Below are positions 4,601 to 59,350 of a stretch of 64,000 bases of DNA, one piece after another. The notes beneath the pieces are model-generated. The model worked only from the letters and a program-made list of their open reading frames with translations, did not search any database and had not been told where the DNA came from. Origin of the DNA: Phyllobates terribilis (lineage: Eukaryota); the NCBI RefSeq assembly GCF_046119375.1, contig NW_027362761.1:201934001-201998000 (forward strand), given 5' to 3'. Positions within the stretch are counted from its first letter, which is position 1. The number at the start of each line of letters is the position of its first letter. The position numbers and the translations under genes are program-made.

Positions 4601-5159
4601 ATTTTGTTATTTTATTCTTATCAGCAGGAGCAGAATACTACTCTCATCATTGTCCCTTGCTAGCGCTGATCGCAACGCCGTCAGGGCACAATGATGAGGG
4701 CAGCATTCAGTAACCTAACTCTAGTGCTGATTCCCAGGAGCCGGTATGGGTCACACTGATGACACAATGATGTCATCTGTGTGTCATCACTGTGCATGTA
4801 TGTTGGACGTTTTGCGGGCTGTGCTGTGAGAAAAACGGCCATGTCAGTGTGTTCTGCCCATGGACACACACTGACATTAGAAGAGACCCATTCATTTGAA
4901 TGGGTCTACGTGTGTCAGTGTCTCCAGTATGTGTGTAAACGGACACCACACGTACTCAAAACACTGACATCTGAAAGGCACCTTAGTCAGGACTAAGAGC
5001 AGTTATGCTCGAAATGCATAGACCTGTGTCCTTTTATTCTCTTTGTATGTTTTGATTTTTAATATTTCCCTTTTTTTAACTATGTTGCTAATAAAATAAT
5101 GTTTTAATATACTTACCTCATTTCCTGCGGATGCTGGATTGTTCCATTTTGCTGCTATA

Positions 5160-9454: not shown

Positions 9455-11091
<1,637 letters not shown>

Positions 11092-15749: not shown

Positions 15750-17399
15750 CAGTTATATGAAAAAGTTTGGGCACCCCTATTAATCTTAAGCTTAATGTTT
15801 TATAAAAATTGGTGTTTTTGCAACAGCTATTTCAGTTTGATATATGTAATAACTGTTGGACACAGTATTGTTTCTGCCTTGAAATGAGGTTTATTGTACT
15901 AACAGAAAATGTGCAATCTGCATTCAAACAAAATTTGACAGGTGCATAAGTATGGGCACCTCACCAGAAAAGTGACATTAATATTTAGTAGATCCTCCTT
16001 TTGCAAAAATAACAGCCTCTAATCGCTTCCTGTAGCTTTTAATGATTTCCTGGATCCTGGATGAAGGTATTTTTGACCATTCCTCTTTACAAAACAATTC
16101 TAGTTCAGTTAAGTTTGATGGTCGCCGAGCATGGACAGCCCTCTTCAAATTATCCCACAGATGTTCAATGATATTCAAGTCTGGGGACTGCGATGGCAAT
16201 TCCAGAACATTGTAATTGTTCCTCTGCATGAATGCCTGAGTAGATTTGTAGCGGTATTTTGGATCATTGTCTTGCTGAAAGATCCATCCCCAGCGTAACT
16301 TCAACTTTGTCACTGATTCTTGAACATTATTGTCAAGAATCTGCTGATACTGAGTGGAATCCATGCGTCCCTCAACTTTAACAAGATTCCCGGTGCCAGC
16401 ATTGGCCACACAGCCCCAAAGCCTGATGGAACCTCCACCAAATTTTACTGTGGGTAGCAAGTGTTTTTCTTGGAATGCTGTGTTTTTTTGCCGCCATGCA
16501 TAATGCCTTTTTGTATAACCAAACAACTCAATCTTGGTTTCATCAGTCCACAGGACCTTCTTCCAAAAAGAAATTGGCTTCTCCAAATGTGCTTTTGCAT
16601 ACCTCAGCCGACTCTGTTTGTGGCGTGCTTGCAGAAACGGCTTCTTTCGCATCACTCTCCCATACAGCTTCTCCTTGTGCAAAGTGCGTTGTATAGTTGA
16701 CCGATGCACAGTGACATCATCTGCAGCAAGTTGATGCTGCAGCTCTCTGGAGGTGGTCTGAGGATTGTCCTTGACTGATCTCACCATTCTTCTTCTCTGC
16801 CTTTCTGAAGTTTTTCTTGGCCTGCCACTTCTGGCCTTAACAAGAACTGTCCCTGTGTTCTTCCATTTCCTTACTATGATCCTCACAGAGGAAACTGACA
16901 GGTTAAATCTCTGAGACAGCTTTTTGTATCCTTCCCCTGAACAACTATGTTGAATAATCTTTGTTTGCAGATCATTTGACAGTTGTTTTGAGGAGCCCAT
17001 GATGCCACTCTTCAGAGGAGATTCAAACAGGAGAACAACTTGCAAGAGGCCACTTTAAGTAGCTTTTCTCATGATTGCATACACCTGGCTATGAAGTTCA
17101 AAGCTCAATGAGGTTACAAAACCAAAAAAAGTGCTTTAGTAAGTCAGTAAAAAGTAGGTAGGAGTATTTAAAACAAGAAAATGATAAGGGTGCCCATACT
17201 TATGCACCTGTCAAATTTTGGTTGAATGCAGTTTGCACATTTTCTGTTAGTACAATAAACTTCATTTCAAGGCAGAAACATTACTGTGTCCAACAGTTAT
17301 TACATATATCAAACTGAAATAGCTGTTGCAAAAACACCAATTTTTATAAAACATTAAGCTTAAGATTAATAGGGGTGCCCAAACTTTTTCATATAACTG
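15750..17399 (-). mobile_element. Full-length Tc1 element with IR/DR-type TIRs (1650 bp)
   Basis: About 210-bp TIRs starting CAGTTATATGAAAAAGTTTGGGCACCC, with an inner DR AAGTATGGGCACC and a TA TSD. Inserted into the hairpin of a Harbinger MITE. Confidence 0.95.
15978..17000 (-). CDS. Tc1 DD34E transposase, uninterrupted 340-aa ORF
   Basis: Starts MGSSKQLS. Contains a paired-like HTH, GRPRK, WTDETK, FQQDNDP and SPDLNIIE, with 34 residues between the second D and the E. Confidence 0.92.
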   Translation of the reverse strand: MGSSKQLSNDLQTKIIQHSCSGEGYKKLSQRFNLSVSSVRIIVRKWKNTGTVLVKARSGRPRKTSERQRRRMVRSVKDNPQTTSRELQHQLAADDVTVHRSTIQRTLHKEKLYGRVMRKKPFLQARHKQSRLRYAKAHLEKPISFWKKVLWTDETKIELFGYTKRHYAWRQKNTAFQEKHLLPTVKFGGGSIRLWGCVANAGTGNLVKVEGRMDSTQYQQILDNNVQESVTKLKLRWGWIFQQDNDPKYRYKSTQAFMQRNNYNVLELPSQSPDLNIIEHLWDNLKRAVHARRPSNLTELELFCKEEWSKIPSSRIQEIIKSYRKRLEAVIFAKGGSTKY

Positions 17400-19557: not shown

Positions 19558-21305
19558 GAGCACACGTCAAACTCTGGCCCATTGGCCAAATCTGGACTGC
19601 ACGATGAGTGTATTTGGCCCAAGACACAACCCGCCTGGCATCACACTTTCAACTGTGTCGACATCCTGGATGCCAATAGAGTTGAAAGCAATGATGAAAG
19701 AGGGAGCGGTAAGCTGAGGCTGCCTCCACTATCATTCTCCCTCTTCATCTGACATTTCAGTACAGCGGCAGCGATGACGTCACTACTGAGGAGTGCAGAA
19801 GTTCAGAGCGCTTGTTGCCAAGATCAGAGCAGCAAGGGAGAGGTATTTTTTTGTTTTAATGTGGGGCCATTATACTGTATGGAAGACTATGTCGGGCCCA
19901 TTATACTCCGTTATACTGTATGGAGGACTACGTGGGGCCCATTATACTGTATGGAGGACTATATGGGGCTATTATACTGTATGGAGGTCTATGTGGGGCC
20001 CATTATAGTGCATGGAGGGCTGTGCGGGGTCATTATACTGTATGGAGGGCTGTGTGGGGCCATTATACTGTATGGAAGGCATTGCAGTGTACCCATTATA
20101 CTGTATGAAGGACTATGTGAGGCCCATTATACTTTATGGAGGACTATGTGGGGCCATTATACTTTATGGAGGACTATATGGGGCTATTAAACTGTATGGA
20201 GGTCTATGTGGGGCCCATTATAGTGTATGGAAGGGAATGCAGGGCCTGTTATACTGTATGGAGGACTATGTCGGGCCCATTATACTCCATTATACTGTAT
20301 GGAGGACTAAGTGGGGCCCATTATACTGTATGGAGGACTATATGGGGCTATTATACTGTATGGAGGTCTATGTGGGGCCCATTATAGTGCATGGAGGGCT
20401 GTGCGGGGTCATTATACTGTATGGAGGGCTGTGTGGGGCCATTATACTGTATGGAAGGCATTGCAATGCACCCATTATACTGTATGAAGGACTATGTGAG
20501 GCCCATTATACTTTATGGAGGACTATGTGGGGCCATTATACTTTATGGAGGACTATATGGGGCTATTAAACTGTATGGAGGTCTATGTGGGGCCCATTAT
20601 AGTGTATGGAAGGGAATGCAGGGCCTGTTATACTGTATGGAGGACTATGTTGGGCCATTATACTATATGGAGGGCTGTGCGGGGTCATTATACTTTATGG
20701 AAGGCATTGCAGTGCACTCATTATTCTGTATGGAGGACAACGTGGGGCCCATTATACTTTATGGAGGACTACGTGGGGCCCATTATACTGTATGGAGGAC
20801 TATGTGGAAGATATTATACTGTATGGAAGGCAATACAGTTATGGGGTCACCATACTTTGCTGAGAGGCAGGTACAGTAGGGTCAACATACAGTACGGGTG
20901 GAGGGTACTGTGGAGGAATTCACTGTGTGGGTATCCTACTGTGTTTGGCGGGCACTTTTATTGACAACATTCTTTATGTTCTGTATTATTCAATGTTTTT
21001 ATACTTTGTTATTACATATTTAAATTAGGCAATTGGGCCATATGCTTTTTACTGCTCTTATATATTATTCCAGTATGTCCAATTTGTAAATAAGTTTATT
21101 TTATTCTAAGATCTATTAATTAAAATGTACTTTGTTTGTGGGACACACTCTTTAACTTTGTTTCCATATGAAAAGCTTCATCGTTATATTTGATGATATG
21201 GAAAAACTTTCTCAATTATAGACTTTTTTTAAATAAATATCAAGGTTGGCCCGCGACTTTGTCCACGTTTTTAATTTTGGCCCTGTGTGTATTTGAGGTT
21301 GCTCT
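19558..21305. mobile_element. Degenerate hAT/Charlie-like non-autonomous element containing a minisatellite
   Basis: Ends resemble GTCAAACTC.GGCCC and GGCCC...TTTGA. TSD not resolved. Confidence 0.5.
19861..20830. repeat. Minisatellite of about 28 bp with a 379-bp higher-order period
   Basis: Unit GGGGCCCATTATACTGTATGGAGGACTATGT. Track ORFs recur at a 379-bp offset (20012/20391 and 20136/20515). Confidence 0.9.
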
Positions 21306-21959
21306 AAGCAGAAGGTCTGGGTGGGCACACGGGCGTCGGTGCAGCAGATGGGTGTAGCATGTGGGAAACAGAGCGCAAAGTAACTAGAAGCCACATTCAG
21401 ACGCGTATAGGCAAGCTAAAAGTTTTAATAAAGTCCTGGAAACCTCAGACAAACAGGTGGGATGCTGGAAACTGCAGGAAAAGTCCAGGAGACAACAGGC
21501 AAGGAGGCAGGATGCTGGAAACCGTTGGAAGATGGGAGACGTCCAGGAGACCACAGGCAAGCAGGCGGGATACTGGAAACCACAGGCAGATGGAAGACAT
21601 CCAGGAGACCACAGGCAAGCAGACAGGATGCTGAAAATAACAAGCAAGCAGGAGACTGCAGGTGGAATGCTGGAAACCACTGGCAGCCAGGGAACGTCAA
21701 GGAGATCACAGACAGGTAGCAGACAAAACTCCAGAGTAACATGAAAGTCTAAGACCATGGAAGCCGCACAAAGCCAAGAAGATGTCCTTAAAATCACAGG
21801 TGAACATGTAGAAGAGGTCCTAGAAGAAAGGAGACAGGTAGCAGACAGAACTCCGGAGAAAGTAGAAAGTCTGAATACCCTGGAAGCTGCAGACAGCCAG
21901 GAAGACGTCCTGGAAACTGCAGGAAGTTGCGATACTGAAAATCGCAGGCAAGTAGATAG

Positions 21960-22530
21960 TGTAAGGTAGCGCTATTCATCATGTTGAGGGGCACTCACTT
22001 CACCGGGTCAATTAAAGCATACATGCAACGTTTTCCGGTAATCTACAGTCCAGCAGTTTATTAAACATCATAAACTGCCTATAACATAGTCCATCTCAGT
22101 GGCTCGCAGGCATGTTACACATGTAATATCCAAGAGCCTTTCCAGTGGCAGATATGCCCACTTGGCTTCAGATACAGCCTTCAGCAAGGTTACAATATCA
22201 ATGTCCATATCAAGCAGAGTTTTTACCTTTGCCGGGTCTAGCGGCTTCCATCAGCTCTGTTCTGCCAAAGCTGTGGCTTAAGGCTCACCAGGTGTGGCCC
22301 CCCCCCCAGGCCACGTGCCTTCCAGGGCTCATGGTGTCCCAGACACAGGGATCAGGTCTTTTGTCTTCCCCCCACTGTTTCAAAACCACCAGGATTTATA
22401 TATCCTTCTGTGCGCACAGGACCTGTGATGATGTCACAGTCATGTGATCAGTCACCTGAAGGGGAGGTACGTGGTCAGCCAGAACACACCCCCTGGACAT
22501 TTTAGTAATGCAGCAATACGCTGCATTACA
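21960..22530 (-). promoter_or_regulatory. 3' LTR of the CGN-FXR1 element
   Basis: 571-bp copy of 27299-27865, preceded on the minus strand by the polypurine tract AGAGGGGGGG-TATA (about 22531-22544). Confidence 0.88.
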
Positions 22531-22586
22531 TATACCCCCCCTCTGTTCAAACTTGTGGGGTTGAACACATAATATGCACAATCACA

Positions 22587-24800
22587 TTATAACCCACGGT
22601 TCACAGAGAGACCATGTACTGGACATTTGCGCTGCTCAGCCCCTGGAACATTAGTCATCAACATTAGCTCATTCCTTAGGAACCTACCATCTGTCATTGT
22701 CACTAACTTCGTCAAGTCACATTTCCGAGTCGTAACCTTGTCAGACCTCCCCCGCTCCCAGCGGTCAATACAGCAGTGTGACTCACTTGCCCTTGTATCT
22801 AAGGTCAGGTCCGACTTCGTACTGTCCCGTACTCTATTGGGTCGTTTGTATGGGCCTCTCAGACCTGAGTTACTGGAGGTCTCACTACCTCTAAACCCAC
22901 AACCCACGCCCACTATCCTCAGGACATCTTGAAAGGTCTCTAACTTCTACTGTAGCCGTTCTATTATTTAGAGGGCCCTTTCTCTGTCTGGTCTCACAAT
23001 TTATAGATGGCTGCCATCTTCTGCTGCTCAGGCGATGCTGTCTTTCCATTCGCAGTCTGGCGAGATTCAACTGTTCTACCTCTCGCAGGTAGGTCACTCG
23101 GTACTCCATCAGCATTCGTATATATGCAAGGTTTTTTTCCGTTCCTACAGCGGAGAATGACACCATGCCGTCTTCATCCGGTATCCAGTCCTGATGATCA
23201 CGTGGACTTCTTACTTTCATCACACCAGACTTCATTACCATCATTTGCATGGCTTGGCCATTTCTCCCAATGAGCTTTCTTACCAGAGCATGAGGCACCC
23301 GGATGACCTCTTCCCGCAGACTTTGAGCTTTTCTCATAAGCTCCAGTTGTCTAATGGCTTGTTCCGTCTTCAACCGGACAAACCGCCTAGTGCGAACACA
23401 TCGCCAGTGCATGTCACTTAGGATAGCCACCCTCTTCACTGTGACTTCGGTTGTAGACAGGACCACCAGCTGTTTAGCTTCTGAGGTCGAGTACACCTTA
23501 CAGGCTCCCATGGCCTTCTTAAACTCCTCATGCACGGACTCGCTGGTGCATTTGACGCGCCCCCTGGCCCGTGGGGTACTCGGCAGCCGGGCCTCTGGTT
23601 GCCGGGGAATATCACGGTGGCTGGCCCGGTCCGTGACTCAGGGCTGTCAGTGAAATGGGGGAATGCTTTTATATGGAGATTTTTGGTATTTTTTCATGAC
23701 GCCACCTGTGGATTCTGGTAAGAGGTTACCAGCGCTGCGGCAGTCCACTGAGGCTGATGTTAGGGGGCAGCTATGATGGGACGGCTCCCCACAGGTGGAG
23801 CGGGCCTCAGGGCAGAGTAGATAGATAGATGGTGGAATGGTGTGCTGGGCGTTGTAGTGCGGTGAGGATCAGTGGTGCCGGTGAAGAAACAGACAGAGGC
23901 TGTTCGATGCAGTCGTCCAAGGTTTTACTTCCAGTTCTTAGGCAAATCACAAATGCACTTTGCAGGTGAAGGCCTCCTTCGTCGCGCTGCGTTCACCGGG
24001 CAGGGGTTCAGTCCTTTCTGAGCAAATTTAGGAATGCCTGGCGGAACCCCACTTTCATATGTACCTATCTTGACCTTTTCCACACTCGGTCCTTCTCACC
24101 GTGGTCCTACGCTGCTCACTCTCATTCCCGCTCGGGTATGCTGAAGTCCTTCCTGTACGTCGGATCCGGGATCAACCTGACCCCCTGGGGTTTTGAGTGT
24201 AGCAACCGATCCCTCCTGATCACCTGGCAGGAGCGGGGCGTACGGGTGCCGTCCTGCACGCGCCGTACCCCCTGGGATCCCTCAAGTAGAATGGAGCCTG
24301 CTCCCTGCTCCCCTCCGGGGCCTCGATCCTGGGCCCTAACTTGTGGAGCAGAGCTCTGACTGAGCCTCTGCTCCCGGACTGTTCGTCTGAACAGCCCTAA
24401 CTAGAACTGCCCACTGTACTGGACTGAACTGAACTCAACTCTCCTAGACCTAATATGGCTTCCTATATATACTTACTGTATATGTGCTCCGTGTATCTGT
24501 TTCCTCCATCCACACCCACTATTGGTTCCCCCTACCTTTGGGTTCCCCCCCTACTCCAGCCAGGGCCAGGGCTCAGCAGAAAACTACATTGCGTCTTGCC
24601 CCTCCTGCTGGCCTGGAGCAGTGTTGTGTTGGATGTAGGTGGTTGGGGTTCCGTGCAGCACTCCCTCCTTACCTGAGAGAAGGGAGACACCACACCTCGG
24701 GGTGAGGTGCAGTATCTCTGTGGCGACTGAACCCTCAGGGGCGCCACACATTCAGTCTCTCAAATCTTCAGCTACATCTATGAGGCACTTGTACCGAGAA
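22587..24800 (-). pseudogene. fxr1: Intronless FXR1-derived segment (KH0 region, KH2, RGG/C-terminal region), split by a solo LTR
   Basis: YKCLIDVAEDLRD (about 24800-24757), then after the solo LTR CTSESVHEEFKKAMGAC..KRVAILSDMH..VP..LV.KLIGRNG..KSGV..EDGMV.F..VGT..YLREVEQL. In a shifted frame, DSTKSDLTLDTRASESH matches FXR1 DNTESDQTADTDASESH. Confidence 0.87.
23553..24748 (-). mobile_element. Gypsy-type solo LTR nested in the FXR1 segment
   Basis: TGACGCGCCCCCTGG...CAGGGGCGCCACA with a 4-bp TSD CATT (23549-52 and 24749-52). Ends are shared with the 29203-30388 copy. Confidence 0.85.
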
Positions 24801-25307
24801 GTTTCTGTTTCCCCAGTGGTCTCCAAACGATCATCAGGTTCAGGATTCAGGGACAACTAACTTTCAGCTTCTTCACCCTGTATGCTTCCCCTGAGCTGAC
24901 TCACAGCTATGAATTCAAGAATTCTCCTCAGGTCCACCTTCTCATGGTATAAAGGATTAAGCGCACCTTGTTTGCCCTTTCCCTTCTCCAAGGCGGCCTC
25001 GTTCACTCATTGGTACTTGCCAGGCGAGCTCGAAAACTTTTTCCTCTAGCTCAGCTACTCGCCTCTTAGCAGCCCATCTCTGAAGCTCTTCCTGCTTCAA
25101 CTGCTCCTATATCAGTAGAGTGCTCTCAGACCTCTCTGTCTCCAATGCGCCCACTCGGCTCTCGACAGCCAGTCTCTCAATCTTCTATTGCTTCAAATGG
25201 GCTTCTAGCGTCTCCTTGAGCTCCTTGATCTCGGCTCTTACATCCACTGAATCATCCAAGCTCGCATTATTCGAGGTGGTATTTACTTCATACCTCCCTT
25301 CTCCAGT

Positions 25308-26200
25308 GGCAAACTCCTGACCCTGGTCTGTGGCTTCTCTGATAGACTCCTCCATCTTTTCCCGCTCAGCTTCCATCCTGCCGATTCTATCCTTAAGGCA
25401 CGTCTCTGCCCTCTGGAGTTCATCACAGAACATCTGCAGCTCCTTCACCTGAGCTTCCAGTCCTAGGATCTTTCTGCGGAGAACATCATTCTCATCACGG
25501 GTGTCCTGTAGAGTGGTCTCAATCACTTGGTGCATGTGCTCTGCATCTGCCTTATCATCCTCTAATTTTTTCTTAACCTTGAGGATATCCTCATAGTCTC
25601 TCTTGGTTTGTTGCAGTTCCCTATTGAATTGTTCACACAGTTGTTCTAGGTCTTGATCATGTCCAGAAACTTCATCCTTCAGCGCCCCTTTTAAGGCAGA
25701 TAGCTCCCTATCCCTCTGGTGTAGACCCTCATCCAGACTTTGCTTCTCCTGAATCAGCTCTGACTGCACCAGGGAGAGACGCTTTTTCATCTCGTACAGC
25801 TCATCTTCAGACTCCACTTTCTCAAGCTTCAACTGAAAAACCTCCTCTTTGGTTTTGCGGAGGTTCTCTTTATTTTTCTGGAACATTTCCTTCCATTTGT
25901 TGATTTCCTCGCTGCTTTCCTCCAGTTCTCGCTGCAAGTTCCTCACAACCTGGTTTATTTTCTGCCGTTCAGACACCAGGCTCAACTGGTCCTAGGACAC
26001 GTTCTCCATGTTTTCCTTAGTTACTGCACGTCGCTCTGATACTGCTGCCTGACAGGCTCCAGCTCTTGGTCATGTTTGGCCACCTCCTCTTTCAGTGCCC
26101 CTTTCAGGGCTGTTGGTTCCTGATCCTTCAGTCTCAGTAGATCATCCAGCTTGTAACGAATCTGCAGAACTGCATCCAACTCTTCCACCTGATCTTCATT
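25308..26200 (-). pseudogene. cgn: Intronless cingulin coiled-coil rod fragment inside the LTR element
   Basis: ORFs 26021..26311 and 25185..25985 contain [58 protein letters not shown] and IETTLQDTRDENDVLRRKILGLE, all collinear with the cingulin rod. They are joined by a 1-nt frameshift and two stops near 26023-25990. Confidence 0.88.
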
Positions 26201-26721
26201 GTTGTCCGATACTGTACCGGAGGTTGCTACTGGCAACGTCACCTCCTCTTCCCTCCTGATCTCCTCTGCTTCTAAAGGAGGATCCACACTTGGAATAAAG
26301 GCACACAGCATTGCATTTTCTTTATTTACCCTTTCAGCAAAGGCTACAGGAGCAACTTTTTTGTGGCCTTTGCGCCTTCGACGACGAGAGGGGGGACTTT
26401 CTCACCTTGTTTAACTCCTCCTGACTGAACTCTTTTTCTACTTTCGTAGTGTCACTGTCAGCTGTGGGGTCTGTGTCACTCCCCATGGTGTTATGGACCA
26501 ACAAGTCACCTCCCACTTTGATGTTAACCCCTTCTTCTGGAGCTAATCAGTTAGCAACGGTCGAATTGTCATTTTAAGGCGGTACCAACACACGACCAGT
26601 AACCAATTTTGGTATTCTACGCTCCACCCTCTTTTGGACAACCACACCTGTAGGGTTTTTTTAAAAAAAAAAAAAAACACGCGATAGTCTTAGGACCCAG
26701 TTCACAACATCTCTTACCACC

Positions 26722-27015
26722 TCACTGGGAACTCTGGGATAGTGCCAGCACCACAGGAGAACTCAAGGAATGGTCTGCTGCCGCCATTCTGTAACATGCC
26801 AACAGCTCCCGCCATTCCTGTACCACGTCCTGCTGCAGCTGCAACAGGCACTTTAATCGCTCAATAGCTTCAGTTTCATTTTCTGCTCCCTTCAGAGCCA
26901 TCTTTATCAGCTCCTGCATTTCTTCAGGACACTCCATTTTGCTGCAGAACGTTTGCAGCTGGTCATCCCACCACTTCTCCATTCCGTCTGGGGATACTGC
27001 TCCATTCATAGCCAT
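26722..27015 (-). CDS. Short upstream helical ORF of the LTR element, unknown product (about 97 aa)
   Basis: The 3' part of track ORF 26722..27234 (MAMNGAVSPDGMEKWWDDQLQ...) lies between the PBS-proximal repeats and the main ORF. No homology recognised. Confidence 0.35.
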   Translation of the reverse strand: MAMNGAVSPDGMEKWWDDQLQTFCSKMECPEEMQELIKMALKGAENETEAIERLKCLLQLQQDVVQEWRELLACYRMAAADHSLSSPVVLALSQSSQ

Positions 27016-27277
27016 CGCGGTATGCTGTTCACACAACTCTCCCTGGAAAAATTTTCGCGGCCCCACCGAGCCACAGCAAACCGGGTTTGAGTGCGACGAC
27101 AATTTTCGTAACCCCGCCGAGTTACAGCCAGATGCTTTGATCTTCGTGGCCCCGCCGAGCCACAGCAAACCAGGTTTGAGTGCGACGACAATCTTCGCGG
27201 CCCCACCGAGCCACAGCCAGATGCTTGCATCCATGTTAGTCGTCCTGTGCCATTACCCCTTGCAACCAGGCTGCAGT

Positions 27278-27296
27278 TGCCCGCATTCTCTAACCA
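27278..27296 (-). other. Primer-binding site, tRNA-Ala type
   Basis: TGGTTAGAGAATGCGGGCA lies 2 nt from the 5' LTR. It nearly complements the 3' end of vertebrate tRNA-Ala(AGC), ...TGCCCGCATTCTCCACCA (recalled). Confidence 0.8.
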
Positions 27297-27298
27297 AT

Positions 27299-27865
27299 TG
27301 TAAGGTAGTGCTATTCATCATGTTGAGGGGCACTCACTTCACTGGGTCAATTAAAGCACACATGCAACGTTTTCCGGTAATCTACAGTCCAGCAGTTTAT
27401 TAAACATCATAAACTGCCTATAACATAGTCCATCTCAGTGGCTCGCAGGCATGTTACACATGTAATATCCAAGAGCCTTTCCAGTGGCAGATATGCCCAC
27501 TTGGCTTCAGATACAGCCTTCAGCAAGGTAACAATATCAATGTCCATATCAAGCAGAGTTTTTACCTTTGCCGGGTCTAGCGGCTTCCATCAGCTCTGTT
27601 CTGCCAAAGCTGTGGCTTAAGGCTCACCAGGTGTGGCCCCTCCAGGCCACGTGCCTTCCAGAGCTCATGGTGTCCCAGACACAGGGATCAGGTCTCTTGC
27701 CTTCCCCCCACTGTTTCAAAACCACCAGGATTTATATATCCTTCTGTGCGCACAGGACCTGTGATGATGTCACAGTCAGTGATCAGTCACCTGAAGGGGA
27801 GGTACGTGGTCAGCCAGAACACACCCCTTGGACATTTTAGTAATGCAGCAAGCCGCCGCATTACA
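27299..27865 (-). promoter_or_regulatory. 5' LTR of the CGN-FXR1 element
   Basis: 567 bp, TGTAAT...TTACA on the minus strand. Contains a TATA-like GATATATAAATCC and an AATAAA on the minus strand. Confidence 0.88.
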
Positions 27866-28329
27866 GTAGCGATACTGGAAACCGCAGGCAGGTAGGTGAG
27901 CAAGGTTACTGGAAACCGCAGACAAGTAGGTGTCGTCCTCCATTGACAGGTAGCTGGTTACTGGAAACTGCAGACAAAATTTCTCCATCTCCTTCACTGT
28001 GTCAGAGCGCAGAAATTGGACTGTACGCCGATGTCATCCAAGTTCAGTCCGAATATGAGATCGAACTCTGGTATGCAGCATTTTTTTTCCTTGGACCATA
28101 GTATAACATTGGTCCGAGTGCGATCCGATGTTTTGTCGGATCACACTAGTACCAATCATACAGTGGTGTGAACGAGCCCTTATGATGAGCTATTAGATTG
28201 AAAAGGGCCCATATATTGTTGTTGCACAGGGGCCCTTTTCTGTCTGTGACCACCCATCATGTATGATAGATACACACATACACACATATGTGATATATAC
28301 ACACACACTTGTATATGTAGACAGACATA

Positions 28330-30708: not shown

Positions 30709-30740
<32 letters not shown>

Positions 30741-31330
30741 ATAAGAGATGCACATGGGGAGATAAGAGATGCACATGGGGGGAGATAAGAGATGCACATG
30801 GGGGAGGGGGATAAGAGATGCACATGGGGGAGGGGGATAAGAGATGCACATGGGGGAGGGGGATAAGAGATGCACATGGGGGAGGGGGATAAGAGATGCA
30901 CATGGGGGGAGGGGGATAAGAGATGCACATGGGGGAGGGGGATAAGAGATGCACATGGGGGAGGGGGATAAGAGATGCACATGGGGGAGAGATAAGAGAT
31001 GCACATGGGGAGGGGGATAAGAGATGCACATGGGGGGGAGATAAGAGATGCATGTGGGGGAGGGGGATGAGAGATGTGCACATGTGGGGGAGGGGGATGA
31101 GAGATGTGCACATGTGGGGGGGATGAGAGATGCACATGGGGGGATGAGAGAGGGGCACATGTGGGGGAGGGGGATGAGAGAGGGGCACATGTGGGGGAGG
31201 GGGATGAGGATGAGAGAGGGGCACATGTGGGGGAGGGGGATGAGAGATGTGCACATGGGGGGGTGGTGAGAGCTGCTCATGGGGGGGTGAGAGCTGCACA
31301 TGGGGGAATTGGGAGAAAATGAGCTGCATA
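30709..31330. repeat. (TG)n followed by a G-rich minisatellite of about 24 bp
   Basis: Units of GATAAGAGATGCACATGGGGGAGGGG. Confidence 0.92.
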
Positions 31331-32534: not shown

Positions 32535-33050
32535 GAGTGGGGGGGATGAGAGATGCACATGGGGGGGGATGAGAGATGCACATGGGGGGGATGAGAGATG
32601 CACATGGGGGGGGATGAGAGATGCACATGGGGGGGATGAGAGATGCACATGGGGGGGGGATGAGAGATGCACATGGGGGGGATGAGAGATGCACATGGGG
32701 GGGATGAGAGATGCACATGGGGGGGATGAGAGATGCACATGGGGGGGGGATGAGATATGCACATGGGGGGGGATGAGAGATGCACATGGGGGGGTGAGAG
32801 ATGCACATGGGGGGGATGAGAGATGCACATGGGGGGGATGAGAGATGCACATGGGGGGGTGAGAGATGCACATGGGGGGGATGAGAGATGCACATGGGGG
32901 GGTGAGAGATGCACATGGGGGGGTGAGAGATGCACATGGGGGGGTGAGAGATGCACATGGGGGGGTGAGAGATGCACGGGGGGGATGAGAGATGCATCGG
33001 GGGGGTGAGCTGCACATGGGGGGGATGAGAGCTGCACATGGGGGGGTTAT
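32535..33050. repeat. G-rich minisatellite of about 21 bp
   Basis: Units of ATGAGAGATGCACATGGGGGGG. Confidence 0.92.
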
Positions 33051-37157: not shown

Positions 37158-40100
37158 CCACTTCGCGCCAGAGCCTGTTTTTGCCTTCGTGACCGGGCCA
37201 ATTTTTTCAATTCTGACCACTGTCACTTTATGAAGTAATTACTCTGGAACACTTCAACGGATTCCCCTGATTCTGAGACTGTTTTTTCGTGACATATTGT
37301 ACTTCATGATAGTGGTAAAATTTCTTCGATATCACTTGCGTTTATTTGTGAAAAAATCGGAAATTTGGCGAAAATTTTTAACATTTTGCAATTTTCAAAC
37401 TTTGAATTGTCATGCCCTTAAATCAGAGAGATATGTCACACAAAATAGTTAATAAATAACATTTCCCACATGTCTACTTTACATCAGCACAATTTTGGAA
37501 CCAAAATTTTTTTTGTTAGGGAGCTATAAGGGTTAAAAGTTGACCAGCGATTTCTCATTTTTCCAACAAAATTTACAAAAACATTTTTTTAGGGACCACA
37601 TCTTATTTGAAGTGACTTTGAGGGGCCTTAATGACAGAAAATACCCCAAAGTGACACCATTCTAAAAACTGCACCCCTCAAGGTGCTCAAAAGCACATTC
37701 AAGAACTTTATTAACCCTTCAGGTGCTTCACAGGAATTTTTGGAATGTGGAAGAAAACAATGAACATTTAACTTTTTTTCACAAAAATGTTACTTTAGAC
37801 CCAATTTTTTTATTTTCACAAGGGTAACAGGAAAAAATGGAATAAACAATTTGTAGTGCAATTTCTCATGAGCGCGCTGATACCCCATATGTGAGGGAAA
37901 ACCACTGTTTGGGCACACTGCAGCGTTCGGAAGGGAAGGAGCGCCATTAGACTTTTTGAATGTAAAATTTGTTTGAATAATTAGCGGACGCCATGTTGCA
38001 TTTGGAGAGCTCCTGATGTGCCTAAACAGTGGAAACCCCACACAAGTGACACCATTTTAGAAACTAGACCCCTTAGGGAACTTATCTAGATGTGTGGTGA
38101 GCACCTTGAACCCCAAGGTGCTTCACAAAAGTTTATAATATTGAGCTGTAAAAATAAAATTTTCACATTTTTCCCACAAAAAAGTTTTTCATCCCTTAAT
38201 TTTGCATTATCATAAAGGTAACAGGATAATTTGCACCATGAAATTTGTTGTGCAATTTCTCCTGAACACGCCGATACCCCATATGTGGAGGCAAACCACT
38301 GTTTGGGCGCACGGCAGGGTTTGAAAGGGAAGGAGCGCCATTTGACTTTTTGAATGTAAAATTTGTTTGAATAATTAGTGGACGCCATGTTGCATTTGGG
38401 GAGCCCCTGATGTGCCTAAACAGTGGAAACCCCCCACAAGTGACACCATTTTGGAAACTAGACCCCTTAGGGAACTTATCTAGTTGTGTGGTGAGCACCT
38501 TGCACCCCCAGGTGCTTCACAGAAGTTTATAATATTGAGCCGTAAAAATAAAATGTTCACATTTTTCCCACAAAAAATGTTTTTCATTCCCTAATTTTGC
38601 ATTATCATAAGGATAACAGGAGAAATTGCACCATGAAATTTGTTGTGCAATTTCTCCTGAGTACGCCGATACCCAATATGTGGGGGAAAACCACTGCTTT
38701 GTTGTACGGCAGGGTTCGGAAGAGAAAGGAGCGCTATGTTGGCTGGGATAGGTTGCAGACACCATGTCACATTTGAAGAGTCGCTGACATGCCGAAACAG
38801 CAGAAACCACCACAAGTGACCCCATTTTGTAAACTACACCTCTCAAGGAATTCATCTAGGGAAGTAGTGAGTATTTTTACATTTTTAAATTTATACCATT
38901 GGGCAGTGAAAAAAACATAATTATATTTTTACCGCAAAAAGATGTTTTACCCTCAGATTTTACATTTTCACACAGGGCAATGGGTAAAATTGGTGCCGAA
39001 ATGTGTCACACAATTACTTCTAAAAGTGGCAATACCCCATATGTGACTGTATCGTACCGCTTAGCCATACGGCGAGATCTGGGAGGGACGGAGCGCTATT
39101 TGACAATTGGAGAACAAATTATTGTAGAATAGGCATTTGGATTTGGGAGCACAAAATTTTCTGAATTTCTTTTGGGGGGCAAGGGCCATTTCGCTTTTCC
39201 AGAACCTTTCAGCTACCAGTAACTTGGAATATTTTTAACAGATGACGGACCTGAGAGGGGACTAGCTTTTTTTTAGGACTGAGTTGAAGCTTTTATTGGG
39301 AGCATTTTACGTAATATTTATCCGGTGCTTGAGGCTGAGCACTTACATCGGGGTTTCCATCTAAATTTCCAAGTGATGTAATTCAGATGAAACCCCTGCG
39401 GGATCCATTCATTGTAATGAGGCAGCAGAGTTACTCTGGACTCCATCTGGCCTCTGTTTAGCAGTGTCCTTTTTTTCAGAAGTGCACAAAACTGTGGCCA
39501 ACCGCACTTTTATGCACGCCTAAAAAAACTGACACCGTGGGATCACAGTTCAGATGGCATCCACAGTGGCCTATATCTGCCTCATTACAGGGAATCTTCC
39601 GTCATGGGTTCCGTCTGAATCACGTATTTCAGAGATTTACACGGAGACTCTGGTGTAAGCGCTCAGCGCAGAATAAATGTGAGCAGAGCCTTACTGCGAT
39701 CTTTGGGAGACATAATAAACAAATCAGTAGCAGGTGAAGAATTGGTTTTATTTATTTTTTACGCCATTCCTCGTGCAGTATAAGTGATGAGATTACTTTA
39801 TTCTTCGGGTTGGTGCGATTACAGAGATACCAGATTTATATCGGGTTTTTATGATTGACAGCTGTCACACACTAAAAGACGCTTTTTTTTGCAAAATCTA
39901 GTTTTTGCATCGCCATGTTTTGAGAGCTATAATTTTTCCATATTTCGGCCGACAGAGTCATGTGACGGCTTGTTTTTTGCGGGATGAGTTGACATTTTTA
40001 TTGGTACCATTTTTGGGTACGTGACATTTTTTGATCGCTTTCTATTCTGTTTTTTGGGAGGTAAAATTAACAAAAACCAACAATTCAGGAATTGTTTTTT

Positions 40101-41454: not shown

Positions 41455-43002
41455 CACTGCTCAAAAAAATAAAGGGAACACTCAAATAACACATCCTAGA
41501 TATGAATGAATGAAATATTCTCATTGAATACTTTGTTCTGTACAAAGTTGAATGTGCTGACAACAAAATCACACAAAAATCATCAATGGAAATCAAATTT
41601 ATTAACCAATGGAGGCCTGGATTTGGAGTCACCCACAAAATTAAAGTGGAAAAACACACTACAGGCTGATCCAACTTTGATGTAATGTCCTTAAAACAAG
41701 TCAAAATGAGGCTCAGTATTGTGAGTGGCCTCCACGTGCCTGTATGACCTCCCTACAACGCCTGGGCATGCTCCGGATGAGGTTGCGGATGGTCTCCTGT
41801 TGGATCTCCTCCCAGACCTGGACTAAAGCATCCGCCAACTCCTGGACAGTCTGTGGTGCAACGTGACATTGGTGGATGGAGCGAGACATGATGTGGGGAA
41901 CGGGCTGGCCAGTCCATAGCTTCAATTCCTTCATCTTGCAGGAACTGCTGACACACTCCAGCCACATGAGGTCTGGCACTGTCCTGCATTAGGAGGAACC
42001 CAGCGCCAACCGCACCAGCATATGGTCTCACAAGGGGTCTGAGGATCTCATCTCGATACCTAATGGCAGTCAGGCTACCTCTGCCGAGCACTGGAGGGCT
42101 GTGCGGCCCTCCAAAGAAATGCCACTCCACACCATTACTGACCCACTGCCAAACTGGTGATGCTGAAGGCTGTTGCAGGCAGCAGATCGCTCTCCACGGC
42201 GTCTCCAGACTCTGTCACGTCTGTCACATGTGCTCAGTGTGAACCTGCTTTCATCTGTGAAGAGCACAGGGCGCCAGTGGCGACTTTGCCAATCCTGGTG
42301 TTCTGTGGCAAATGCCAAGCGTCCTGCACGGTGTTGGGCTGTGAGCACAACCCCCATCTGTGGATGTCGGGCCCTCATACCACCCTCATGGAGTCGGTTT
42401 CTAACCGTTTGTGCAGACACATGCACATTTGTTGCCTGCTGGAGGTCATTTTGCAGGGCTCTGGCAGTGCTCCACCTGTTCCTCGCACGAAGACGGAGGT
42501 AGCGGTCCTGCTGCTGGGTTGTTGATCTCCTACGGCCCCCTCCATGTCTCCTGGTGTACTGACCTGTCTCCTGGTAGAGCTTCCAGCCTCTGGACACTAC
42601 GCTGACAGACACAGCAAACCTTCTTGCCACAGCTCGCATTGATGTGCCATCCAGGATGAGCTGCATTACCTGAGCAACTTCTGTGGGTTGTAGAGTCTGT
42701 CTCATGCTACCACGAGTGTGAAAGCACAACCAACATTCAAAAGTGACCAAAACATCAGCCAGAAAGCATTGGTACTGAGATGTGGTCTGTGGTCCCCACC
42801 TGCAGAACCACTCCTTTATTGAGGGTGTCTTGATAATTGCCAATAATTTCCATCTAATGTCTATTCCATTTGCACAACAGCATGTGAAATTGATTGTCAG
42901 TCAGTGTTGCTTCCTAAGTGGACAGTTTAATTTCACAGAAGTTTGATCTACTTGGAGTTATATTCTGTTGTTTAAGTGTTCCCTTTATTTTTTTGAGCAG
43001 CG
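41455..43002 (-). mobile_element. Tc1-family element with a disrupted transposase
   Basis: TIR CACTGCTCAAAAAAATAAAGGGAACAC. ORFs 42070..42843 (VLFTDESRF) and 41713..41979. Confidence 0.9.
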
Positions 43003-45594: not shown

Positions 45595-47121
45595 CAGTGG
45601 GGAAAAAAGTATTTAGTCAGCCACCAATTGTGCAAGTTCTCCCACTTAAAAAGATGAGAGAGGCCTGTAATTGACATCATAGGTAGACCTCAACTATGAG
45701 AGACAAAATGAGAAAACAAATCCTGAAAATCACATTGTATGATATGGAAAGAAATTTTTTTCAAATTTTGGTGAAAAATAAGTAATTGATCAATTACAAA
45801 AGTTCATCTCAATACTTTGTTATATATCCTTTGTTGGCAATGACAGAGGTCAAACGTTTTCCGTTTTTCACAAGGTTGGCACTGTTGCTGGTATGTTGGC
45901 CCATTCCTCCATGCATATCTCCTCTAGAGCAGTGATGTTTTGAGGCTGTTGCTGGGCAACACGGACTTTCAACTCCCTCCAAAGGTTTTCTAAAGGGTTT
46001 AGATCTGGAGACTGGCTAGGCCACTCCAGGACCTTGAAATGCTTCTTACAAAGCCACTCCTTCAATGCCCTTGCTGATTGAAGGAGGTTTGCACTCAAAA
46101 TCTCACGATACATGGCCCCATTCATTCTTTCATGTACATGGATCAGTCGTCCTGGTCCCTTGGCAGAGAAACAGCCCCAAAGCATGATGTTGCCACCCCC
46201 ATGCTTCACAGTAGGTATGGTGTTCTTTGGATGCAACTCAGCATTCTTTCTCCTCCAAACACACCAAGTTGTGTTTCTACCAAACAGTTCTACTTTGCTT
46301 TCATCTGACCATATGATATTCTCCCAATATTCTTCTGGATCATCCAAATGCTCTCTAACAAACTTCAGACGGGCCCGGACATGTAATGGCTTAAGCAGGG
46401 GGACACTTATGGCACCGCAGGATCTGAGTAGTGTGTTACTGATGGTAGCTTGTGTAACGTTGGTTCCAGCTCTCTGCAGGTCACTCACTAGGTCCCCCGT
46501 GTGGTTTTGGGATTTTTGCTCACCGTTCTTGAGATCATTTTGACCCCACGGGGTGAGATCTTGTGTGGAGCCCCAGATCGAGGGAGATTATCAGTGGTCT
46601 TGTATGTCTTCCATTTTCTAATTATTGCTCCCACAGTTGATTTTTTTCACACCAAGCAGCTTGCCTATTGCAGATTCAGTCTTCCCAGCCTGGTGCAGGG
46701 CTACAATTTTGCTTCTGGTGTCCTTCGACAGCTCTTTGGTCTTCACCGTAGTGGAGTTTGGGAGTATGACTGTTTGAGGTTGCGCACAGGTGTCTTTTAT
46801 ACTGATAATAAGTTCAAACAGGTGTCAGTACTACAGGTAATGAGGAGGACAGAGGAGCCTCTTAAAGAAGAAGTTACAGGTCTGTGAGAGCCAGAAATCT
46901 TGCTTGTTTGTAATTGACCAAATACTTAATTTTCCACCAAAATTTTAAAAAAATTTCTTTCCAGACAAAAAATCAGACAATGTGATTTTCAGGATTTGTT
47001 TTCTCATTTTGTCTCTCATAGTTGAGGTCTACCTATGATGTCAATTACAGGCCTCTCTCATCTTTTTAAGTGGGAGAACTTGCACAATTGGTGGCTGACT
47101 AAATACTTTTTTTCCCCACTG
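45595..47121 (-). mobile_element. Tc1 element with a disrupted transposase
   Basis: TIR CAGTGGGGAAAAAAGTATTTAGTCAGCC and TA TSD. ORF 45868..46488 contains WSDESK and SPDLNPLE. Nested in an older Tc1-like remnant (about 45514-47313). Confidence 0.92.
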
Positions 47122-58339: not shown

Positions 58340-59350
58340 ATATTGAGCACACGTAGCCATCTATACACAGCGGGAGGCTGCACGGTGCCATCTATACACA
58401 GCGGGAGGCTGCACGGTGCCATCTATACACAGTGGGAGGCCGCACGTAGCCATCTATACACAGAGGGAGGCCGCACGTAGCCATCTATACACAACGGGAG
58501 GCCGCACGTAGCCATCTATACACAGCGGGAGGCCGCACGTAGCCATCTATACACAACGGGAGGCCGCACGTAGCCATCTATACACAACGGGAGGCCGCAC
58601 GGCGCCATCTATACACAGCGGGAGGCCGCACGGCGCCATCTATACACAGCGGGAGGCCGCACGGCTCCCCCCGCAGAGACAGCAGGAGGCCGCACGGCGC
58701 CATCTGTACTCAGCAGGAGGCCGCACGTAGCCATCTATACACAGTAGGAGGCCACACGGTGCCATCTATACACAGCAGGGGGCCGCAAGGCGCCATCTAT
58801 ACACAGCAGGAGGCCGCACGGCGCCATCTATACACAGCGGGAGGCCGCACGGCGCCCCCCCAGAGACAGCAGGAGGCCGCACGGTGCCATCTATACACAG
58901 CAGGAGACCGCAAGTAGCCATCTATACACAGCGGGAGGCCGCACGGCGCCATCTATACTCAGCAGGAGGCCGCACGTAGCCATCTATACACAGCAGGAGG
59001 CCGCACGGCGCCATCTATACACAGCAGGGGGCCGCACGGCGCCATCTATACACAGCAGGAGGCCGCACGGCGCCATCTATACAAAACAGGGGGCCGCACG
59101 GCGCCATCTATACACAGCAGGGGGCCGCACGACGCCATCTATACACAGCAGGGGGCCGCACGGCGCCATCTATACACAGCAGGGGGCCGCGCGGCGCCAT
59201 CTATACACAGCAGGGGGCCGCACGGCGCCATCTATACATAGCGGGAGGCCGCACGGCGCCATCTATACATAGTGGGAGGCCGCACGGCGCCCCCCCCAGA
59301 GACAGCAGGAGGCCGCACGGCGCCAATTATACTCAGCAGGAGGCCGCACG
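58340..59350. repeat. Minisatellite of about 29 bp
   Basis: Units of GCCATCTATACACAGCGGGAGGCCGCACGGC. Confidence 0.92.

Follow-up and report, generated by a model that had tools for sequence, protein, structure and literature searches.

The capture of host genes by LTR elements is known and is usually a dead end. Acutely transforming retroviruses, which by v-onc transduction gain host mRNA at the cost of viral genes, exist as defective proviruses that need a helper. A capsid-forming Gag is normally required by LTR elements, and BARE-2, a non-autonomous LTR element with gag only, makes its own Gag and borrows Pol. LINE-1 ORF1p, which multimerises through a coiled coil and also has an RNA-binding domain, forms a coat on the RNA that encodes it. 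The maize LTR retroelement Bs1 carries three transduced host gene fragments joined into one chimeric ORF, which is reported to be transcribed and translated (PMC13317346), and crocodilian ERVs have captured the mRNAs of KIT-ligand and nectin3 (Chong et al. 2014, PMC4299795); the latter keep gag and pol, no viral domain having been lost when KIT-ligand was gained, and nectin3 having replaced env only (PMC4299795).

The stretch of Phyllobates terribilis DNA analysed here (64,000 nucleotides, referred to as the window) contains at 21960-27865 an LTR retroelement whose sense strand is the minus strand. Like Bs1 it is an LTR element without pol whose ORF is a mosaic of host gene fragments from separate transductions; however, Bs1 has a plant host, a low copy number and captured enzyme fragments, whereas the frog element has an animal host, a core predicted to be an RNA-binding module that is under selection in two frog families, and many recent insertions. 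With the crocodilian ERVs it shares intronless host-derived ORFs that are monophyletic with the host gene as sister, occur in more than one species and are under purifying selection, but here all retroviral genes are gone and the captured genes code for RNA-binding and coiled-coil proteins of the cell interior rather than for ligands of the cell surface. Host mRNA has been captured at the expense of viral genes, with dependence on a helper, as in the acutely transforming retroviruses, although neither an oncogene nor infectious spread is indicated and the family has been in the germline for tens of millions of years. Any likeness to LINE-1 ORF1p and BARE-2 would lie in a possible working mode only, as there is no homology and both types of module, KH domains and coiled coils, come from the host. 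The features of the element, in sense order and with its relatives designated L001-L008, are the following.

27866-27869 (GTAG) and 21956..21959 (ATAG), no strand: 4-bp target-site duplication with one mismatch.
27299..27865, minus strand: 5' LTR, 567 bp, TG..CA; L002 and L003 have homologous LTRs.
27278..27296, minus strand: PBS-like sequence TGGTTAGAGAATGCGGGCA, slightly damaged, 2 nt past the end of the 5' LTR.
27051..27228, minus strand: 89-bp tandem repeat in the leader, with four hairpin copies (5-bp stem, loop YCRGYGGG).
26722..27015, minus strand: leader ORF of 97 codons, starting MAMNGAV, upstream of the main ATG.
26656..26677, minus strand: homopolymer tract separating the leader ORF from the main ORF, T15 A7 in the sense direction.
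26484..26486, minus strand: ATG in ACCATGG, start of the acidic N-terminus (MGSDTDP); the same Met is kept in L003 and L004.
26357..26386, minus strand: putative basic patch, by sequence reading, out of frame in the window copy.
25308..26185, minus strand: cingulin rod fragment (tblastn), corresponding to residues 553-946 of Bufo cingulin less an internal deletion.
25010..25307 (approximate), minus strand: ancestral coiled-coil linker, common to the cingulin-free relatives by sequence comparison.
24878..24964, minus strand: LONP1-derived fragment (ALNPLY... and RRILEFIAVSQLRGS); 16 codons present in L003 are deleted.
24753..24793, minus strand: start of the FXR1-derived part (KH0 N-terminus, YKCLIDV), interrupted by the solo LTR.
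23553..24748, no strand: solo LTR of another element, 1,196 bp with TG..CA ends, a secondary insertion.
22900..23552, minus strand: FXR1-derived KH0 and KH2, then a long helix; the KH2 GRNG motif is kept and KH1 is absent.
22587..22899, minus strand: tail derived from the FXR1 C-terminus, with degenerate RGG region and stop codon, homologous to the tail of protein P0160.
22531..22548, minus strand: polypurine tract AGAGGGGGGG, adjoining the 3' LTR and kept in all relatives.
21960..22530, minus strand: 3' LTR, 571 bp, TG..CA, direct repeat of 27299-27865.

Paired LTRs, a PBS and a polypurine tract had been claimed from the sequence, and all are present. The LTRs (571 and 567 bp, both TG..CA) differ by 12 mismatches and 2 gaps in 571 aligned columns (97.2% identity), a divergence that gives the window copy an age of about 4 My. 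Paired LTRs with TG..CA ends are likewise seen in L001-L007. The PBS, which we take to match the 3' end of tRNA-Ala, is preserved as an undamaged 18-mer, TGGTGGAGAATGCGGGCA, in L004 and L005, both young and intact relatives. Four relatives (L001, L002, L004 and L005) have perfect 4-bp target duplications, and for L004 a paralogous empty site exists.

The interiors of the elements measure 3.2-3.7 kb and are filled by a leader and the chimeric ORF. Pfam searches reveal no coding capacity for gag or pol (PR, RT, RNase H, IN), with no match to Gag, RT or IN in the window or in the proteins of its relatives; Gag CA, NC and other domains give nothing above noise, the single match to Gag_p30, in protein P0158 (E 0.031), being below threshold. 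Because this coding capacity is lacking the element is non-autonomous, and a search for an autonomous partner found none. The family is a non-autonomous LTR retroelement of poison frogs (Dendrobatoidea) without gag, pol or env, much as the original prediction had proposed: it is multi-copy, lacks gag and pol, and has an ORF under purifying selection. No published description of the family was found in the searchable literature, in keeping with the claim that none was known for this architecture.

From 26486 to 22587, less the insert, the main ORF amounts to about 900 codons, which agrees with the predicted length once the solo LTR is removed, and the predicted strong-Kozak start at 26486 is borne out by ACCATGG and by conservation of the Met in L003 and L004. 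The reading path passes through frames -3, -1, -3 and -1 (with a short -2 stretch), then the solo LTR, then -2 and -3, with premature stops near 26023, 25994, 25187, 25109, 25009 and 24859. In all there are about 5-7 shifts of frame and 5-6 stops, little different from the predicted 4 and 5 or so. The solo LTR is bordered by a target duplication, AATG (24749-24752 and 23549-23552), is missing from the corresponding point in L002, L003 and L004, and has no further copy in the window or in the loci compared. The window copy is dead.

Two host genes, cingulin and FXR1, had been recognised in the interior; both are there, and LONP1 is a third. The cingulin part is a rod fragment only: the L003 ORF is 64.6% identical over 395 aa to Bufo cingulin residues 552-946, and the head domain (the ZO-1 interaction region) and the tail are absent, there being no match to Bufo residues 1-551 or beyond 946. 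What had been taken for a novel helical linker proves instead to be the ancestral coiled coil together with the LONP1 fragment, whose L003 version matches human LONP1 residues 383-425 in a PDB search (E 1.6e-12). This match comprises only about 43 plus 12 residues situated upstream of the AAA+ module, and the AAA+ and protease domains of Lon protease (LONP1) are not in the element. Patches homologous to the basic patch occur in Ranitomeya proteins P0010-P0012 and in the Anomaloglossus ORF, and on sequence comparison none is evident in the Dendrobates proteins.

The FXR1 region had been described as KH0-KH2-RGG, and KH0, KH2 and a degenerate RGG tail are indeed found, with the correction that KH1 is missing. 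KH0 matches Pfam KH_9 (E 2.9e-14, 53.6 bits against a cutoff of 24.2) and FMRP residues 148-213 in the PDB. KH2 matches PDB 2qnd (E 7e-16), is a type I KH fold with GRNG (GxxG) kept, and has the GxxG motif in 13 of 14 aligned element sequences. An AF2 model of the window FXR piece (pLDDT 82) gives KH-fold matches that include 2qnd, and the piece models as a KH fold. The tail has weak Pfam matches to FXR_C1 and FXMRP1_C_core. A 61-column deletion that removes KH1 is common to all dendrobatid elements; the Anomaloglossus element has KH1 without GxxG. The N-terminal tandem Agenet/Tudor domains are absent, as homology begins at the KH0 N-terminus in every member, and the elements carry pieces of FXR1 rather than FXR1 genes.

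The element FXR domains are monophyletic (support 99/97) and sister to R. imitator FXR1, the one FXR1 representative in the tree, rather than to FMR1 or FXR2 (100/98), and their branching order mirrors the host phylogeny. A single clade with frog FXR1 as its sister means that capture happened only once and long ago: the FXR1 piece (KH0, KH1, KH2 and the C-terminal tail) was taken up before the Aromobatidae/Dendrobatidae split, KH1 was deleted later in the dendrobatid branch, and about 390 cingulin rod codons and two small LONP1 pieces were added upstream in the Phyllobates branch. FXR1 is thus the old core of the family and cingulin a later addition, seen only in Phyllobates copies. We place high confidence in this account of the identity and history of the element.

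The element is no one-off, as copies at other loci show. Three more P. terribilis copies (L002, L003 and L004) have the same architecture, so that cingulin and FXR1 segments occur together between homologous LTRs at no fewer than three other loci. L002 and L003 are degenerate, and most of the Phyllobates copies seen are broken; L004, the only intact cingulin-bearing copy seen, has LTRs 98.8% identical and a single uninterrupted ORF of 998 codons that runs through leader, cingulin, LONP1 and FXR, a continuous reading frame in a natural copy. Neither of the two outcomes named beforehand as refuting the prediction therefore holds. Relatives in Dendrobates, Ranitomeya and Anomaloglossus have the FXR1 part and no cingulin segment, and carry an additional N-terminal domain. 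Intact ORFs with young LTRs are found in D. tinctorius (L001, 900 codons; L007, 895 codons) and in R. variabilis (L006, 917 codons, with 99.7% identity between its LTRs). A 793-codon ORF is present in R. imitator L008, for which no flanking LTR pair was found, and A. baeobatrachus L005 (LTRs 99.1% identical) is split into ORFs of 398 and 698 codons.

Nei-Gojobori estimates on tblastn alignments of paralogues, decayed copies included, give dN/dS values for KH0-KH2 of 0.20-0.27 within Phyllobates (Z -3.6 to -4.2) and 0.36-0.39 between Dendrobates and Ranitomeya, with 0.38-0.55 for the whole ORF. In the cingulin, linker and LONP1 parts constraint is mild (0.33-0.84, with intervals that sometimes include 1). 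The ORF has been kept open under purifying selection, strongest on KH0-KH2; without selection, an ORF of 800-1,000 codons would not be expected to stay open across dS > 0.7, and in other copies selection has kept it intact over tens of millions of years.

The leader has features of its own. The hairpin array is present in every leader in all genera sampled, with compensatory changes in 4 of 5 pairs and 96.7% paired cells, and none of 500 shuffles reaches the observed covariation score. The leader ORF is found in L002-L004 only, without a relative in Pfam or PDB; in L004 it is fused in frame to the main ORF, coding sequence standing in place of the homopolymer tract. Neither this separate 97-codon ORF nor the hairpin array upstream of the ATG figured in the original prediction.

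A plausible explanation is that the protein serves the element itself, in a manner resembling Gag or LINE-1 ORF1p. The coiled coils would multimerise the protein, while KH2 and the basic and RGG-like regions would bind element RNA, perhaps at the conserved hairpin array, to form an RNP much like those of Gag/NC or LINE-1 ORF1p. Such an RNP might favour RNA stability, packaging or access to reverse transcriptase and integrase, which would be supplied in trans by an autonomous partner. We consider this mechanism quite possible, at a little short of even confidence, and the explanation as a whole, in which it is blended with the far firmer identity and history, to be evenly balanced. More tentatively still, this may be a lineage that dropped gag, pol and env and substituted a self-encoded RNP protein built from host parts (the KH domains and tail of FXR1, and coiled coils that include the cingulin rod) that recognises its own covarying leader hairpins; this protein would then be a convergent, cis-acting one of the LINE-1 ORF1p type that has sustained the transposition of a helper-dependent family in poison frogs over more than 36 My.

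The protein might instead act on host factors, as a mimic or decoy that pairs or competes with FXR1, FXR2 or FMRP and so blunts FXR-linked control of the element, be it translational repression or small-RNA silencing, or that hijacks FXR granules and ribosome association. This would suit the retention of KH0, KH2 and the tail without Agenet/Tudor domains in all members, and the placing of the strongest constraint on KH0-KH2; Siomi and colleagues are said to have located in 1996 the region of FXR homo- and heteromerisation inside what is now KH0, which the element keeps. However, the element domain shares only about 40-44% of its residues with host FXR1 and has a long branch, where a strict mimic would be expected to be closer, and the added coiled coils and leader hairpins are left unexplained, so that we regard such a role as unlikely.

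A neutral origin, in which pieces of host mRNA caught by template switching hitch-hike and the ORFs are intact merely because they are young, gains something from the youth of the open copies (LTRs 98-99.7% identical), which could be open by chance, from the number of broken Phyllobates copies and from the weak constraint on the cingulin, linker and LONP1 parts. It is already disfavoured, and in our estimation very improbable, by the KH0-KH2 dN/dS of 0.20-0.39 (Z down to -4.2), by ORFs of 793-998 codons open in four genera, in copies differing by dS > 0.7, and by the retained GxxG. Purifying selection, and the annotation of several copies as protein-coding by NCBI, could reflect one or a few copies domesticated to serve the frog, the rest being by-products, but intact copies in each species lie at non-orthologous loci with young LTR pairs and target duplications, the mark of a family that is still transposing and not of a single-copy gene that has become fixed, and there seems hardly any chance that domestication is the explanation.

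With service to the element itself as our preferred reading, the family presents a captured RNA-binding module kept under selection in elements that have neither gag nor pol, and of which new insertions were arising, in at least five species belonging to two frog families, as recently as the past few million years. It offers a natural system in which to ask what a non-autonomous retroelement gains from an RNA-binding protein of its own, whether host KH and coiled-coil modules can replace functions of the Gag or ORF1p type, and how such families add to the very large, repeat-rich genomes of dendrobatids. A practical point is that copies are at present labelled as host genes ("cingulin-like", "fxr1-like" or "restin homolog"), and seven to nine "cingulin-like" proteins of P. 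terribilis derive from the sister copies.

The minus-strand element of the window is bounded by two direct repeats, at 21960-22530 (571 bp) and 27299-27865 (567 bp), which are its LTRs and both of which have the form TG...CA. On the minus-strand reading TGGTTAGAGAATGCGGGCA begins 2 nt past the upstream LTR and the polypurine run AGAGGGGGGG lies directly before the downstream LTR; the paired LTRs, PBS-like site and PPT of the original prediction are all located in this copy. A search for tRNA genes, made as a check on the PBS, found none. The element is flanked by a 4-bp duplication with one mismatch and sits in a 58-bp satellite-like tandem repeat that is present on both sides of it (21427-21959 and 27866-27990), in a window sequence with zero N. 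Twelve mismatches and 2 gaps separate the LTRs, giving an identity of 97.2%, and at 2.5e-9 per site per year, the rate applied to LTR dating in Dendrobates tinctorius (PMC11152451), the 2.1% divergence corresponds to an insertion about 4 My old.

Neither the ORFs nor a Pfam scan of the interior suggested gag, pol or env, in keeping with the predicted absence of gag and pol. Instead, the interior has the following parts, given in sense order (the minus strand of the window).

Interior of the window copy
First part of interior, sense: leader with an 89-bp tandem repeat
26722-27015, sense, after the tandem repeat: leader ORF of 97 codons
Between leader ORF and ATG, sense: T15A7 tract
26484-26486, sense: ATG within ACCATGG
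3' of the ATG, sense: acidic stretch, then basic patch
26185-25308, sense: cingulin rod fragment, matching residues 553-946 of Bufo gargarizans cingulin
Between cingulin and LONP1 pieces, sense: additional coiled coil
24878-24964, between the coiled coil and the FXR part: short LONP1 fragment
FXR-family block: Pfam KH_9 (E 2.9e-14), PDB matches to FMRP KH0 and KH2
23553-24748: solo LTR of 1,196 bp with duplication AATG, splitting the sequence that codes for the KH0 N-terminus
End at 22587, sense: FXR C-terminal-like tail

The solo LTR belongs to an unrelated element and is missing in sister copies; the window and 118 kb of retrieved frog loci were searched without revealing a second copy. The frame path and stop count of the window copy (about 5-7 frame changes and 5-6 premature stops) uphold the earlier reconstruction of an ORF of about 900 codons. 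Its FXR block has no KH1 between KH0 and KH2. When the 214 FXR residues of this copy were modelled with AlphaFold (mean pLDDT 82), the model matched FMRP KH1-KH2 (2qnd) along with many KH domains of type I, at a TM-score of about 0.8 and an rmsd of about 2.2 A over about 80 residues.

Searching with the cingulin piece returned seven to nine P. terribilis proteins, "cingulin-like" or uncharacterised, on at least five chromosome-scale contigs, and three of these loci (L002, L003 and L004) were fetched. L002 and L003 are degenerate, with 84-92% identity to the window copy, and carry the parts in the same order between homologous LTRs. L004 has LTRs that are 98.8% identical and one unbroken ORF of 998 codons (protein P0160), which takes in, in this order, the leader ORF, the basic patch, cingulin, the coiled coil, the LONP1 remnant, KH0-KH2 and the tail. 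An uninterrupted paralogue of the L004 flank (1465-1887, against 4663-4774 and 10008-10322) lies 3 kb upstream, and this "empty site" confirms the insertion boundaries. Cingulin and FXR1 therefore co-occur repeatedly, between homologous LTRs in all three loci, and a natural copy is intact; the original prediction had named as telling against it that cgn and fxr1 never co-occur elsewhere and that a consensus has no continuous ORF. Identical junctions in independent loci contradict an assembly chimera, and the sister copies, together with the selection described below, contradict a one-off neutral capture.

In an exhaustive search with the FXR piece the best matches were to non-FXR genes: proteins of 700-900 residues in Ranitomeya variabilis, R. 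imitator and Dendrobates tinctorius, and shorter ones in Anomaloglossus baeobatrachus. The loci that encode them hold LTR elements belonging to the window element's family.

Relatives of the window element in other frog genera
L001, D. tinctorius: 900-codon ORF, LTRs 97.8% identical
L007, D. tinctorius: 895-codon ORF, LTRs 98.5% identical
L006, R. variabilis: 917-codon ORF, LTRs 99.7% identical
L005, A. baeobatrachus: two ORFs of 398 and 698 codons, LTRs 99.1% identical
L008, R. imitator: 793-codon ORF, no LTR pair found in a search of its flanks

The family shares the PPT, a related PBS (the 18-mer TGGTGGAGAATGCGGGCA in both L004 and L005), 4-bp target duplications and leader motifs, and throughout it the end of the ORF runs on through the PPT into the 3' LTR. 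The Dendrobates, Ranitomeya and Anomaloglossus relatives are without cingulin and LONP1. NCBI annotation of frogs treats the copies as host genes, named "cingulin-like", "RNA-binding protein fxr1-like", "restin homolog" or uncharacterised (P0001-P0017, P0158-P0161, P0291), and some of these gene models splice over lesions.

A maximum-likelihood tree of vertebrate FXR1, FXR2 and FMR1 places the element FXR domains in one clade (99/97), sister to R. imitator FXR1 (100/98). Within the clade Anomaloglossus branches first, then Phyllobates, then Ranitomeya with Dendrobates, an order that agrees with the host phylogeny. This topology indicates a single capture of FXR1, which would predate the aromobatid-dendrobatid split; an age of about 36 My is cited for the common ancestor of Dendrobatidae in PMC11152451. 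KH1 is still present in Anomaloglossus copies, its GxxG lost, and a KH1 deletion of 61 columns is the same in all dendrobatid copies.

Cingulin, LONP1 and the leader ORF were found in Phyllobates copies only. LONP1, the third captured host gene, is represented by two small pieces of the mitochondrial Lon protease (window 24878-24964; L003 8294-8578); the L003 version is the fuller one and matches residues 383-425 of human LONP1 (E 1.6e-12). As the two pieces map to regions of LONP1 about 170 residues apart, the fragment from which they came had undergone a deletion or alternative splicing. All the captured pieces are colinear with proteins and intronless, as would be expected had they been taken from mRNA. 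The leader ORF (about 97-122 codons; window 26722-27015, L003 6235-6603, L004 6001-6198) shares its reading frame with the main ORF in L004, the intact copy, but is separated from it by a stop and the T15A7 tract in the window and L003. It has no Pfam match, and its only matches in the PDB were spurious, to a designer-repeat motif of 10 residues; this ORF, too, may be a captured fragment. The ancestral coiled coil has no relative in the PDB.

Relatives outside Phyllobates carry N-terminal QKG-type 18-nt coding repeats, a Cys-rich motif and a beta-rich domain (L005 5663-6859; P0011 1-250; P0159 60-300). By eye this N-terminal domain looks retropepsin-like, with DSG/DSR and IIGRD-type motifs, and it could be the last remnant of an ancestral gag-pro. 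Neither Pfam nor a family-profile search of the PDB gave a match, an AF2 model was unusable (pLDDT 36), and a homologue search returned family members only, with no Gag-Pol and no autonomous partner.

Selection on the ORF was estimated as dN/dS (Nei-Gojobori with bootstrap), with values that are inflated by decayed copies.

dN/dS of the chimeric ORF
L004 against window, L003 and L002 copies, KH0-KH2: 0.20-0.27 (Z -3.6 to -4.2)
Same comparison, tail: about 0.40
Same comparison, cingulin: 0.33-0.65
Same comparison, linker and LONP1: 0.56-0.84
Same comparison, leader and N-terminus: 0.63-0.70
D. tinctorius against Ranitomeya, KH0-KH2: 0.36-0.39
D. tinctorius against Ranitomeya, whole ORF: 0.38-0.48 (Z -4.6 to -5.7)
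Two D. tinctorius copies against each other, overall: 0.45

ORFs of 800-1,000 codons are still open across lineages at dS > 0.7, which argues for selection on coding capacity, and the GxxG of KH2 is retained in 13 of 14 element sequences.

Every leader contains one to six copies of a hairpin with a 5-bp stem, an 8-nt loop YCRGYGGG and a 3' CGAAG (four copies at window 27053-27218, minus strand; other arrays at L001 5476-5821, L007 4361-4822, L006 5542-5645, L008 4616-4719, L004 5786-5901 and L005 5318-5343). Compensatory changes occur in four of the five stem pairs, between copies and between genera, and four stem variants swap both partners (GUGGC/GCCAC, GUAAC/GUUAC, GUGGA/UCCAC and GCAAC/GUUGC). 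Pairing holds in 96.7% of all cells and drops to 23-48% when the partners are slid, and none of 500 shuffles attained the observed covariation score. Where the loop motif occurs outside leaders, no complementary arms flank it, and an Rfam scan of the element, hairpins included, gave no family match. The array is a candidate cis-acting RNA signal, for packaging, dimerisation or protein binding.

The window element thus belongs to a helper-dependent LTR family whose sole gene is a host-derived chimera under selection, chiefly on its KH module. We infer that the element uses this protein as an RNA-binding factor that multimerises, in a role like that of Gag or ORF1p, possibly acting on the leader hairpin array, while the enzymes would be supplied by a partner element. 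The main rival to this explanation is that the protein acts on the host's FXR proteins, as a decoy for them or by hijacking them. That the gene is a neutral passenger, or instead a domesticated host gene, is disfavoured in either case by the selection data and by the young, non-orthologous, LTR-flanked insertions. The nearest precedents are maize Bs1 and the captures of KIT-ligand and nectin3 by crocodilian ERVs; a search of the literature found no description of this family.

Elsewhere in the window there are six ORFs or fragments of Tc1/mariner (Sleeping Beauty-type) transposases (9674-10754, 15978-17045, 42070-42843, 45868-46488, 53127-53846 and 62442-63491), a content consistent with Tc1-rich dendrobatid genomes. 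Two of these are near-full-length (355 and 349 codons) and lie in copies that are 98% identical across a shared 300 bp. Long tandem arrays occupy 19859-20832, 58356-59350, 30740-31285, 32538-33046 and 37848-38734, and include two distinct 31-bp arrays, G-rich arrays of 22-26 bp whose GC skew is strong, and a repeat of 394 bp.
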